In this document: positions 16,574-60,420 of the stretch, one piece after another
Layout: every line of letters begins with the position of its first letter
Numbering within the stretch: the stretch's first letter is position 1
Sequence record: OR699282.2
Direction: 5' to 3' (one strand)
Length of the DNA: 64,000 nucleotides
Position numbers and translations under genes: made by a program
The notes under the pieces: generated by a model
The model's input: only the letters and a program-made list of their open reading frames with translations
Database searches by the model: none
Told to the model about the DNA's origin: nothing

Positions 16574-17199
16574 TGAAGCCACGTTGTATAGTTTTTGATT
16601 GTGATGAAGTTCTATTGGACCATATGGGTATGCTTTCTGAGTTTGTAAAACAAACTTATAATATCACACCATCAACACCATACCCATTAGAATATGATTT
16701 ATCAGACTGGTTGGGTGTTCCTCAACCTGAAGTTAAAAAGATTCTTGAACAGTTCAACCAACAATCATATTTGTTTGGGTTGTTAAAGCCAGTCGAACCA
16801 AATACAGTTGATATTGTACAAGAGCTACGTGATCGTTTTCATAAAGAAAAATTCGTAGTACTCACAAAATGTGGTAAAAAAGGCTATGGTGAAGTTTTAC
16901 GAAATGTAAATCTAATGCGTGAATTTGGTGAAAACTGCTTTGATGAGATTATTATCATAGAAATGAATGAATCAAAGAAAGAAGCATTAGAGGATTTACA
17001 AACACGATATGATGTAAAACTAATGATTGATGATTATATCAATAATATTGAAACTGCTATGGGTCTTGGTATTCCATCAGTTATGATGGGATGTTCTCAT
17101 AATACTATGTATAAGAATCATAGTGGTTTTGAATATATCGAAAACTGGACAGAACTTAGACTGAAAATTTATTCAGTACTAGGTAAATATTACAAATAA
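16573..17199 (+). CDS. HAD-superfamily hydrolase (5'-deoxyribonucleotidase-like)
   Basis: FDCDEVLLD motif I and LMIDDY motif IV. Confidence 0.7.
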   Translation: MKPRCIVFDCDEVLLDHMGMLSEFVKQTYNITPSTPYPLEYDLSDWLGVPQPEVKKILEQFNQQSYLFGLLKPVEPNTVDIVQELRDRFHKEKFVVLTKCGKKGYGEVLRNVNLMREFGENCFDEIIIIEMNESKKEALEDLQTRYDVKLMIDDYINNIETAMGLGIPSVMMGCSHNTMYKNHSGFEYIENWTELRLKIYSVLGKYYK

Positions 17200-43624: not shown

Positions 43625-44037
<413 letters not shown>

Positions 44038-45650: not shown

Positions 45651-47071
<1,421 letters not shown>

Positions 47072-47073
47072 TA

Positions 47074-47130
<57 letters not shown>

Positions 47131-47215
47131 AGTAAGAGTAAAAATGAAAGTAAGTAAAAAAACTACCAAGCAGCTTGAAGAACTTTGTAGTGCTGCACCT
47201 ATGCCGACTCTTGGC

Positions 47216-47316
<101 letters not shown>

Positions 47317-47328
47317 TATCTTACTTCT

Positions 47329-47410
<82 letters not shown>

Positions 47411-47424
47411 AATAAAGGTACACT

Positions 47425-47850
47425 ATGAAATACAACATTGTTAAAATGGTGAACTATGTATTAAAAAACAACGCATGGTCACTGCATGATGTACATATAG
47501 AAGATATTGGTGAAGTTAGAGTATTTTGCTATGATCCAGATTTGAATCAAACCACAGATTTGAGTAAATGTTTTAATATTTTTCTTGGTTATGAATTCAA
47601 TAATCATTTTTATTCATTTGATGTGTATTTTGAAAAAGTTATATTCAGAAGTTATGAATGTGATAATGAAGATTATGATTATGATGATGAATCAATTGAA
47701 TTGAATGTTAACGATATTGATACTGAAGAAAAATTCTTCCAGTACTGCCTCGTTAACAACACATTAGGATTAACATTTGATGACATTAGTGCTATCCTTA
47801 AAGTTCAAAAATTGATTCCAGAAGAGGTATTAAATCCGTTAAATGACTAG
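47425..47850 (+). CDS. FQxS-box family protein
   Basis: TEEKFFQYCLVNNTLGLTFDDI. Confidence 0.75.
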   Translation: MKYNIVKMVNYVLKNNAWSLHDVHIEDIGEVRVFCYDPDLNQTTDLSKCFNIFLGYEFNNHFYSFDVYFEKVIFRSYECDNEDYDYDDESIELNVNDIDTEEKFFQYCLVNNTLGLTFDDISAILKVQKLIPEEVLNPLND

Positions 47851-48050
47851 AACAGTTTACAAGCACAATGGTGTGGTGTATCTAGCAGATAATACTGGAA
47901 CTTGGATTGTTAATCAAGGTAATCCACCAAATCCATATTCAGTTGGAAGTGAGTTTTCACTTAAAAGAACATGGCTATCAACTGATAATATGTGTAAGTA
48001 TGGGGATTTTGATACATATGAAGATGCTATGAATCGTGTTCGTTCTATAA

Positions 48051-48428
48051 TTGATTAAAAGGTACTTGATGGATAGTCTAATAGTACGTATAATGCAAGA
48101 TGTTCGTAAGAATCTTTATACTGGTAATTTTGATGATCATAACATAAAAATATTATGTTATGATGGTTTCACACTGACACATCCATCAGAATCTAATAAT
48201 ATATACATAGCATATACTTCTCCTAATATTTTGTATCAATTTGATTTATATAGTACAATGGCTAAGATAACCTTAGATGTTTCTAATGAGCCGATTTTTA
48301 TAGCAGTACGTGATGTTGAGTACACAGAAGAGTCATTATTCCAGTACTCAATGATAAATGACATTGGTGACTTGACATTAGAAGAAATAAATGTTATAGT
48401 TGGTATGTGTCGTTTGATTAATCCATAA
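48051..48428 (+). CDS. FQxS-box family protein
   Basis: TEESLFQYSMINDIGDLTLEEI. Confidence 0.75.
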   Translation: MIKRYLMDSLIVRIMQDVRKNLYTGNFDDHNIKILCYDGFTLTHPSESNNIYIAYTSPNILYQFDLYSTMAKITLDVSNEPIFIAVRDVEYTEESLFQYSMINDIGDLTLEEINVIVGMCRLINP

Positions 48429-48441
48429 CTCGGAGCTTAAT

Positions 48442-48917
48442 ATGTTTTGGAATTTGTTATGCTTATTTGGTCGTACATTGGTTCTTGCTATTATTCATAC
48501 ACCTGGTATTCGTAATTATGTTTCTTATGAATTTAAGAAAAATTATCATAACAATACTGAAGTTCGTACAACTAAGATGTGCAAAGACTTCAAGGTAGAT
48601 GTTCCACCATTCAAGAAGTACGAGGATGAATAATGGAATTCATTGTTGCACCTGATGAACTTAAAACATTTACGTTCAGAGATAATAACAATTATCCTTA
48701 TACAAATCATTCATTGAATTCATTGCATGTTATTTCAATCATTGCATCTGAATACAGAGATAATCCATGTATTGATTTTAAAACCACTGATGGTGAATAT
48801 ACATGGGTGTTCCCAAAAGATAAATATAGTTATCAAGGGGCAGTAGAAATTCGTGACTCGATTCTAAAACAAATCGAAGATGGAAATACTCATCCTAAAC
48901 TAAACACTCAGTACTGA
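48442..48917 (+). other. two small hypothetical ORFs (48442-48633, 48633-48917)
   Basis: GGAG and GAGGA RBS, coupled. Confidence 0.55.
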
Positions 48918-48930
48918 AATCGTTTAACCC

Positions 48931-49070
48931 GATAGCTTCTAGTCAGTACTGATTCCTCCTTATGTATAGAAGCTATCACTTTTTTACGTATAATGATATT
49001 ACCCTCAAATTCATTATATTCGTTACCCTCTAACAGTATCTTTTTATTCCTCTTGGATGCTGTAATTTAG
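48931..49070 (+). ncRNA. array of four hairpins with CCUC-containing loops
   Basis: loops contain TTCCTCCTT, ACCCTC, CCCTC and TTCCTC; first stem is an 11-bp terminator-like hairpin. Confidence 0.45.
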
Positions 49071-49142
49071 AAGTTGACTTTTTAACTTCTACTGTGTTAT
49101 ACTTAAGGCTGATTCGATGAATCGGCCTTTTTTCTTATATAG

Positions 49143-49571
49143 GTGAATGCAATGAGTTATTTGTTTACTTTAATTGATAAGTATGTTGACATTGTATACC
49201 GTCAAGTTTGTAGTGATACGTTTGAAACAAAAAACCCAATTAGAGATGGCATTTTTGATGTTGTCGTTGGATCATTTTTGAATGGATACACCGAGACATT
49301 ATACAACAGTAATAATATTTTTATTTCAGTTCAATCCAGACATACATCAGACTATGCTGTTAGCATTGATATTTGGGAAAATAATATAGAAATAGATATA
49401 ACGGAACATACTAACATTCATGTTGATGATACATTTAATCAATTAACTGAAGAAATGTACTTGCAGTTGAATTTTGTACATGATCTTACAAATATCAGTT
49501 ATGATACATTAAGGAAAATATGTTTTCTTAGTGGGGTGATCCGTAGTAATATGAGTAAGGATGGGAAGTGA
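49143..49571 (+). CDS. FQxS-box family protein
   Basis: TEEMYLQLNFVHDLTNISYDTL. Confidence 0.7.
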   Translation: MNAMSYLFTLIDKYVDIVYRQVCSDTFETKNPIRDGIFDVVVGSFLNGYTETLYNSNNIFISVQSRHTSDYAVSIDIWENNIEIDITEHTNIHVDDTFNQLTEEMYLQLNFVHDLTNISYDTLRKICFLSGVIRSNMSKDGK

Positions 49572-49989
49572 AATGTTAAAAATTCCACCTAAGTCGTTAA
49601 CACATCTTATTGAATGTGGTGTAATATTTTCCGAAGGTGATACCTCATCATACACATCGGTCGATGAACCTTATAATTTTTCATACCAATCTTATAAAAA
49701 TAATTCTAAAATTTCTTGTAGATATGCTGAAAACATATTAATAGATGTTTCGTTACATAATGTTCCGAAATTTTACATTGATATCTTTGGTGATTCTTTG
49801 ACAATTCGAACATATGATTATTTTATTAATAACGACCTCTTGAGTCTTCCAATTGAACATGATACTATAGATTCAGAGATGTTCTTTCAACTATCAACAG
49901 TTTACGATTTACAGGGTTTAACTGTTGAGCAGTTGAATGGAATATTTGAGATTTCACGAAACATACGAAGCAGGAATAAAAATGTCTAA
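49561..49989 (+). CDS. FQxS-box family protein
   Basis: DSEMFFQLSTVYDLQGLTVEQL. Confidence 0.75.
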   Translation: MGSEMLKIPPKSLTHLIECGVIFSEGDTSSYTSVDEPYNFSYQSYKNNSKISCRYAENILIDVSLHNVPKFYIDIFGDSLTIRTYDYFINNDLLSLPIEHDTIDSEMFFQLSTVYDLQGLTVEQLNGIFEISRNIRSRNKNV

Positions 49990-60200: not shown

Positions 60201-60420
60201 AAATTTGAGTACTCACATTAAGTATTTGATTGCATAGATACTTAATGAAGATACACTATGTTTAAAAGTGTAGACCGTCATATGAAACTGAAGTAGAGAG
60301 AAACAGGATGACCCGCTTTCGCACTCGTTATGAGTAATCTTCAATGCAATAGCTCTGATACCATCAGCGTCAAATTTCCCTCCTTGTGGGGGGAAGAAAA
60401 ATCCCTTCCTCAAATCCCGT
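60201..60420 (+). ncRNA. candidate structured ncRNA D (about 220 nt)
   Basis: AAATTTGA/TCAAATTT closing stem, 10-bp and 6-bp perfect hairpins, TTCCCTCC/GGGGGGAA hairpin. Confidence 0.55.

Follow-up and report, generated by a model that had tools for sequence, protein, structure and literature searches.

A hairpin array with exposed CCUC motifs in the probable 3' tail of an Asteriusvirus early operon, and its likeness to anti-Shine-Dalgarno RNAs

Among described RNAs, the closest in design to the element analyzed here is LhrC, in which three redundant UCCC sites, placed in a loop, a linker, and the terminator loop, were shown experimentally to bind the G-rich region before the start codon; LhrC is G-poor, and its C-rich motif has been called typical of low-GC organisms (PMC4132741, PMC2790875). 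Here, we describe a hairpin array in an Asteriusvirus jumbo coliphage whose predicted sense-strand RNA displays the tetramer CCUC four times. The array is the core of a 234-nt gap without genes, at positions 48918-49151 of the window, by which we mean the whole 64,000-nt stretch of record OR699282.2. Like LhrC and other UCCC-loop RNAs (RsaE/RoxS, RNAIII, IsrR), it carries redundant C-rich motifs in loops and a linker (PMC4132741, PMC2790875, PMC9410917), and it shares with LhrC-type RNAs a G-poor composition, a low-GC genome, and a motif complementary to the Shine-Dalgarno core. Unlike these RNAs, it reads CCUC rather than UCCC, has no sequence or Rfam relationship to them, and lies in the tail of an E. 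coli phage operon without a promoter of its own. Since the exactness, exposure, and redundancy of CCUC and the scarcity of G match the published LhrC design, we tentatively favor, with a probability of roughly 0.4, a reading in which the array would be a sense-strand regulatory RNA with redundant anti-Shine-Dalgarno-like seeds that pair with GAGG-type ribosome-binding sites.

Other described elements share single aspects of this architecture. Enterobacterial small RNAs derived from messenger RNA (mRNA) 3' ends are cut from the layout seen here, in which the array follows a stop codon and is closed by a strong intrinsic terminator and its U-run (PMC9438474); unlike for them, no extended seed-target match was found for the array. 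The PeSL cassettes of T4-type phages likewise combine a stem-loop, a sigma-70 early promoter, and a terminator between small, variable early open reading frames (ORFs) (PMC2839356, PMC4122927), and the array is again PeSL-like in that its spacer is more conserved than the downstream gene. However, PeSL cassettes are short and present in many near-identical copies per genome, whereas the array is single-copy and adds a 130-nt hairpin stretch with C-rich loops; by copy number, it falls outside that family. With CsrB and RsmZ, the array has in common the repetition of a short motif in hairpin loops, i.e., a multivalent display, but the motif is CCUC instead of GGA, there is no family match, and four motifs compare with the about 7 to 22 of CsrB and RsmZ. 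In summary, the element is a lineage-specific, single-copy, and undescribed RNA feature.

Motif cluster, fold, and transcript layout

The four CCTC words start at 48955, 49003, 49027, and 49049, three of them in hairpin loops and one in a linker (Table 1), and all four are unpaired in both the minimum-energy and the centroid fold. An earlier reading of the window from its letters alone (hereafter, the sequence-only reading) had placed CCTC in four hairpin loops in an AT-rich context, and a repeated unpaired display within a structured, AT-rich, non-coding stretch is supported. The + strand of the window holds 35 copies of CCTC in 64 kb, which gives P ~7e-4 for four copies within 100 nt, or P ~0.04 when only intergenic DNA is considered, where the array gap accounts for 4 of 12 copies. 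In the 370-kb genome of the relative G17, the array is the sole sense-strand cluster of four CCTC, and no second copy of it was found in the G17, A4, or JNE01 genomes. Base composition is also skewed. The stretch 48973-49052 contains 19 C and 4 G in 80 nt, placing it in the top 0.13% of 80-nt stretches in the window; C exceeds G in only 2 of 24 intergenic gaps, far more strongly in the array gap (44 C vs. 33 G) than in the other, and the ratio of C to G at the locus lies between 1.3 and 2.4 in every lineage, compared with 0.78 for the sense strand on average. The conserved core, CCUC, is complementary to GAGG, the Shine-Dalgarno core, and its four unpaired copies provide what characterizes the anti-Shine-Dalgarno class of RNAs, namely, several exposed C-rich motifs complementary to that core. 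The loop of the first hairpin, H1, additionally carries CAGUACUG and UUCCUCCUUA, an 8-nt match to the 3' tail of 16S rRNA (CCUCCUUA).

Folded as + strand RNA, the whole gap reaches -61.2 kcal/mol with a z-score of -8.7, compared with z -4.2 for the - strand, and contains five hairpins, H1, H2, H3, H4, and T2, each of which was also folded singly and compared with 200 shuffles. The sequence-only reading had counted four hairpins, each presenting a C-rich loop. H1, H2, and H3 are borne out (z about -4.5 to -5.5), while the fourth, GTTA/TAAC, has a negligible fold (-0.4 kcal/mol, z -1.0, matched by 8 of 200 shuffles) and is no meaningful hairpin; its CCCTC is therefore part of the single-stranded H2-H3 linker. 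The TATAAT pointed out in the same reading is present at 48989-48994, where it forms the 5' arm of H2. Pairing is also possible between the copies of TCAGTACTGA upstream of H1 and in the H1 loop, with 98% of cells paired across relatives and one compensatory pair. By eye, the arms of H1 (48931-48977) and H4 (49068-49091) also look alike in inverted order (AGCTTCTA, TAGAAGCT vs. AACTTCTA, TAGAAGTT), a likeness for which a long-range alternative pairing or a common origin is possible.

Table 1. Features of the array gap and its flanks, in window coordinates.
Feature	Position	Strand	Description
Upstream ORF	48633-48917	+	94 codons; stop codon 48915-48917
Upstream copy of palindrome TCAGTACTGA	48909..48918	+	Overlaps stop codon (48915-48917) of ORF 48633-48917
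H1	48931-48941 / 48967-48977	+	11 bp, 25-nt loop with TCAGTACTGA and TTCCTCCTT; -17.2 kcal/mol, z -5.5
H2	48988-48996 / 49011-49019	+	9 bp, AU-rich, 14-nt loop UAUUACCCUCAAAU; -6.0 kcal/mol, z -4.6
Linker H2-H3	49020..49032	+	Single-stranded UCGUUACCCUCUA; includes GTTA/TAAC
H3	49033-49041 / 49055-49063	+	9 bp including two G-U pairs, 13-nt loop UUUUAUUCCUCUU; -10.1 kcal/mol, z -4.5
H4	49068-49091	+	10-bp hairpin, holds -35 box of next promoter; -9.0 kcal/mol, z -4.3
Sigma-70-type early promoter	49074-49103	+	TTGACT, 18-nt spacer, TGtTATACT (extended -10); 10/12 matches plus TG
T2	49105-49135	+	Intrinsic terminator: 11-bp stem, 3-nt loop, U-run; 49105-49129 fold -14.6 kcal/mol, z -5.4
Shine-Dalgarno AGGTGA and ATG (49152) of downstream ORF	49141..49154	+	Start region of the 139-codon ORF
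Downstream ORF	ATG 49152, to 49571	+	139 codons

The fold z-score, most wobble pairs, the U-runs, and the direction of the genes favor the + strand as the better reading. Both U-run terminators, H1 and T2, read on the + strand; H3 has two G-U pairs, and nearly all relatives keep a U-G pair in T2. In H1, the one-sided changes of UE-S1 and JNE01 give G-U pairs on the + strand and would be A-C on the - strand, whereas one change in H2 of UE-S1 points to the - strand instead. The neighboring genes are all on the + strand, as are nearly all genes in the region. The proposal of a + strand RNA with anti-Shine-Dalgarno potential is plausible, and the observation behind it was largely right. The companion idea of an 'inverse CsrB', i.e., an anti-GGA sponge, is unsupported: a search of Rfam returned no match at the gathering score and, at E up to 10, just chance-level hits over H4 and T2, and the + strand loops contain no GGA, let alone the many A(N)GGA loop motifs by which CsrB and RsmZ are recognized. 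Neutralization of CsrB-type RNAs, also suggested in that reading, fares no better, as it would need UCCU, which just 2 of the 4 motifs carry.

The layout of the transcripts follows from the end of the gap, where a promoter and a terminator overlap. With the usual 7-nt spacing, transcription from the sigma-70-type promoter is predicted to start at ~49110-49112, within the 5' arm of T2 (49105-49115). RNAs that begin there should therefore lack the GC-rich base of the stem and read on, while RNAs arriving from upstream would carry the full hairpin, so T2 should stop only upstream transcripts, which would make the array the ~215-nt 3' tail of the upstream early operon. We consider it likely that the array is such a structured, untranslated sense-strand tail, running from the stop codon at 48917 to T2 and holding H1-H4; this is well supported, as is the location of the next operon's sigma-70 promoter at the end of the tail. 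Nowhere in the gap is conservation across 11 relatives higher than in the -10 region of the promoter, which is invariant, and in T2, which is annotated as a terminator in the G17 and UE-S1 records. Placing a promoter inside a terminator is an elegant, though familiar, arrangement for keeping two transcription units apart. T2 has the features of an intrinsic terminator and is conserved; H1 has them only in the PBECO4/121Q lineage, to which the window belongs and in which a U6 run (48980-48985) follows the stem, and even there with an unusually large loop. Given the 25-nt loop and the absence of the U-run from other lineages, termination is not the conserved role of H1. Two other promoter-like sites were rejected: the TATAAT at 48989 has no -35 box and its conservation is accounted for by the H2 stem, and ATGATA-16-TATATT is a weak site of a kind that is not enriched.

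Conservation in relatives

The array was followed through a phage collection of 36 records in seven lineages. Beyond it, an exact-pattern scan of viral contigs gave 121Q as the sole match, and a metagenome scan gave 35 loci, just one of them a real relative, near-identical to the window. The motifs are kept in the PBECO4, 121Q, Ecwhy_1, JNE01, and A4 lineages and largely lost in UE-S1 and ph0011. Where they are kept, they are kept exactly: all 11 of the C-rich loop and linker motifs read across lineages contain CCUC, which argues for sequence-specific recognition over mere C-richness. Similarly, in the Ecwhy_1 group (including BF17), none of 16 CCTC columns has changed, compared with 11 of 63 other unpaired columns and 2 of 58 stem columns.

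The individual hairpins differ in how they evolve. In six lineages, 100% of the H1 cells are paired; two of the changes are wobbles, and a compensatory pair occurs in A4. The H1 loop is better conserved than the unpaired sequence around it: the core CAGTACTG..TCCTCCTT is kept in five of six lineages, with TCTCC in UE-S1, and CAGUACUG and UCCUCCUU are almost fixed. The TCAGTACTGA copy upstream of H1 is invariant in 11 relatives and is kept in JNE01, although it is intergenic there. H2 and H3 are ~92% paired. The H2 stem is kept with no covariation seen; as for the loop motif of H2, the Ecwhy_1 group and A4 (ACCTCC) retain it, JNE01 has a reshaped form, and UE-S1 no longer has it. The linker block TTACCCTCTAACAGTATC is the best-conserved C motif of all. 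H3 shows three one-sided wobble changes and a single compensatory pair. Its loop is rich in C in the window, in JNE01 (CCCCCCTCTC), and in the Ecwhy_1 group; A4 has CCCTCCCTC on a different stem at this position, and the H3 loop is lost in UE-S1 and ph0011. A hairpin at the position of H4 is present in 7/7 lineages, the arms in A4 being different yet still complementary, and T2 hardly varies; JNE01 has A-U in place of U-A there, a compensatory swap.

In the two most distant lineages, JNE01 and A4, the C-rich loops persist or grow while the stems are reshaped, with CCCUCA and CCCCCCUCUC in the former and ACCUCC and CCCUCCCUC in the latter. Loss of the loops from stems that persist, which the sequence-only reading would have counted against itself, thus occurs in one lineage, UE-S1, and is reversed in these two. 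As for the stems, they persist and show a few compensatory changes. The gap is also an insertion and deletion hotspot; for example, A4 (locus ~480-575) has a ~95-nt insertion with a hairpin of its own between H1 and H2. JNE01 lacks the 94-codon gene and its flanking proteins are only 58% and 29% identical, yet its spacer DNA is 72.5% identical. Identity of the downstream protein is 46% for Ecwhy_1 and 44% for A4. Thus, the gap is better kept than at least one neighboring gene. Taken over all lineages, the motifs look selected in most and dispensable in some, as the losses in UE-S1 and ph0011 indicate.

More distant members of the RaK2-like group were also scanned for clusters. K64-1 has no sense-strand cluster of at least three CCTC, while the sole sense-strand cluster of three in GAP32 (NC_019401.1, 275352-275443; CCCCTCT, TTCCTCT, and TCCCTCT) lies between an ATPase gene and tRNA-Trp, overlapping an annotated 43-codon ORF, and may be a loosely similar element.

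A regulatory RNA and its rivals

If the array is a regulatory RNA, it would act as an mRNA tail, or as a fragment cut from that tail that keeps T2 as its 3' hairpin. The four redundant CCUC, exposed in three loops and one linker, would serve as seeds that pair with G-rich, GAGG-type ribosome-binding sites in at least one mRNA of the phage or the host, and this pairing would lower the translation of the paired mRNAs, as LhrC, RsaE, and RNAIII do in low-GC bacteria. A bolder version is that the tail RNA, with its four CCUC and the CCUCCUUA match in H1, might be a multivalent blocker that masks host or rival ribosome-binding sites, which, judged from the motifs, is conceivable if doubtful. If true, a phage would here encode a multivalent blocker of translation, something demonstrated to date just for Gram-positive small RNAs, and if the CCUC loops act at all, they would offer a compact and easily mutated model of phage control of, or interference with, E. 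coli translation starts. Should the array be nothing more than a Rho entry site or a structured end of the transcript, it would count as ordinary phage punctuation.

Several observations weigh against a regulatory RNA of this kind. No convincing promoter for a separate small RNA was found in the gap, and a duplex scan of G17 for phage targets found no complementarity beyond chance, the best non-self duplexes resting on the ubiquitous CAGTACTG palindrome or on chance-level matches of 12-15 nt. Four-base seeds are generic, and most known regulators with C-rich loops come from Gram-positive bacteria. Neither H2 nor H3 shows covariation above shuffled controls. UE-S1 retains the stems of H2 and H3 and has lost the C's of both loops, with changes in 6/16 of its CCTC columns against 27/64 of other unpaired columns. 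Lastly, ph0011 (locus ~540-600) is deleted from the 3' half of H1 through H2, i.e., over most of the array. As to pairing in cis, the Shine-Dalgarno sequences of the neighboring ribosome-binding sites vary and, by eye, none has extended complementarity to the array.

A separate match to the linker block was seen in the terminal repeat of G17 (16625-16646 and 366774-366795), where coding DNA on the opposite strand matches TATTCGTTACCCTC over 14 nt exactly, or 22 nt with two mismatches; with E ~0.02 per genome, it may be chance. An mRNA from that site would be complementary to the linker.

Composition fits a different function very well, a Rho-loading (rut) site, in which the C-rich, G-poor tail after the stop codon at 48917 would load host Rho, ending read-through before or at the next promoter and backing the weak H1. 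The ~80-nt stretch described above, with C well above G in untranslated RNA, is what such a site calls for; it comes directly after the stop codon, its bias recurs in every lineage, and of the window's two C-over-G gaps it is by far the stronger. In the lambda tR1 terminator, rutA and rutB are separated by boxB, and the C-rich parts of the array are similarly split by a hairpin. The turnover of motifs in UE-S1, which gained CCCTC upstream of H1 and lost two loop motifs, would also fit a signal read by composition. However, rut sites are usually unstructured, whereas over half of the array stretch lies in stable stems (H2, -6.0 kcal/mol; H3, -10.1 kcal/mol), and the motifs are sequence-exact, always CCUC and not any C-rich string. 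Moreover, T2, a strong intrinsic terminator within the next 100 nt, would make Rho redundant. On balance, we regard a rut site as unlikely. A boxA-like antitermination signal was considered and rejected, since the array shares just CUCU..AACA with the rrn boxA sequence and the motif is not repeated elsewhere.

The lineages that lost the motifs point in another direction, that of a purely structural tail, whose hairpins just end, process, or protect the upstream mRNA, with CCUC loops that have no function and are inherited by descent. UE-S1 stems without loop motifs and the ph0011 deletion speak for this explanation, as do the stems being the parts kept best in close relatives (see the Ecwhy_1 counts above) and the U6 run after H1 in the window's own lineage. 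It is harder to reconcile with A4 and JNE01, in which the loops are even more C-rich although the sense strand is only ~15% C, with a cluster unique in 370 kb while the window's other terminators and hairpins have no such loops, and with an H1 loop more conserved than its unpaired surroundings. This explanation, too, appears improbable to us.

Less likely still is a protein-binding platform, in which a phage or host protein recognizes CCUC in RNA loops or DNA sites, the latter including the two CAGTACTG palindromes that lie 35 bp apart at the locus. The CCUC core is exact and repeated at distances of ~22 to 48 nt, which speaks for such a platform. Both CAGTACTG copies are invariant, also where non-coding, and the octamer occurs in early-promoter spacers as well, an operator-like placement; because these palindromes belong to a genome-wide family (232 copies in G17 vs. 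2 for a control word), a platform is plausible at least for H1. Against it, no candidate protein was found, the neighboring ORFs having no Pfam family; TTACCCTC is not enriched genome-wide, with 12 copies vs. 11 for a control word; and the wobble pairs favor RNA stems over DNA sites.

Two explanations have little left to recommend them. A - strand RNA acting as a CsrB-like sponge, its GGA or GAGG loops sequestering CsrA, was put forward in the sequence-only reading; H1 does read AAGGAGGAA and H3 GAGGAA on that strand, but GGA is confined to these two loops, is absent from the H2 and linker motifs and from the loops of several relatives, and is not the conserved core, which is GAGG. Together with the weaker fold (z -4.2 vs. 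-8.7), the A-C mismatches that would replace the G-U pairs of H1, H3, and T2, the failure to find a terminator or a convincing promoter on the - strand, and an Rfam search that gave no CsrB or Rsm match, this makes the sponge very improbable. A 25-codon gene at 48993-49070, in which CCCTC repeats would encode Leu-Pro-Ser twice, is annotated as a coding sequence in two records, G17 and 121Q, but we give it next to no credence, as its ATG is not preceded by a Shine-Dalgarno sequence, an extra nucleotide in the Ecwhy_1 group causes a frameshift that leads to a stop after 13 codons, and the frame is not kept in UE-S1, JNE01, or A4.

Genomic setting and other observations

The window is 95-99% identical to the PBECO4/121Q group of Asteriusvirus jumbo coliphages and matches Escherichia phage BAU.Micro_ELP-22 at 100%. 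Asteriusvirus phages of the PBECO4/121Q type are RaK2-like, a group whose early regions consist of short ORFs behind host-type RpoD promoters (PMC5259590) and which depends on host RNA polymerase, as described for PA5oct (PMC7318152). Little is known of post-transcriptional control in RaK2-like jumbo phages, and we found no transcriptome data for the genus Asteriusvirus. The early operon upstream of the gap also includes tRNA-Thr and four ORFs, and no Pfam families were found in the neighboring ORFs. Four ORFs of ~120-140 aa, starting at 47425, 48069, 49152, and 49561 (window 47425-49989), are weakly related to one another, the best pair with 30% identity and E 6e-11; the gap thus sits within a fast-evolving family of small early proteins.

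The palindromic octamer CAGTACTG extends far beyond the array. The window has 24 copies between 16432 and 63729, e.g., at 43639, 44048, 44427, 46764, 46885, 48909, 48944, and 62275, and in RaK2-like phages of three genera the octamer is ~100-fold over-represented. Counted against its reversed control word, it occurs 232:2 in G17, 224:2 in A4, 233:4 in JNE01, and 222:3 in Ecwhy_1, as well as 242:1 in K64-1 (Alcyoneusvirus) and 130:2 in GAP32 (Mimasvirus). In G17, 23% of the copies are intergenic, as against 9% of the DNA. The sites include early-promoter spacers (several abutting the -10 box), coding DNA, the stop codon before H1, and the H1 loop, and their flanks extend weakly to TTTCAGTACTGAAA. 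From this distribution, CAGTACTG looks like a conserved DNA site for a protein or a modification; no paper naming the octamer was found.

Two other places in the window show G-rich or C-rich hairpin sequences. At 46771-46795, a hairpin with the stem GAATCAC/GTGATTC has a G-rich loop, CAGGGGAGGTT, that is a perfect 9-nt complement (AGGGGAGGT to ACCTCCCCT) of a C-rich loop ~500 nt away, at 47277-47285, upstream of tRNA-Thr; judging by their complementarity, these loops may pair with each other, over a long range or loop to loop, inside the non-coding stretch 46742-47334. The second is a C-rich tail near 60400-60420, which the sequence-only reading had listed as related to the array and which does exist: at 60379-60420, CCCTCC pairs with GGGGGG in a small hairpin, followed by a single-stranded CCCTTCCTCAAATCCCGTC and then by a TTGACA promoter.

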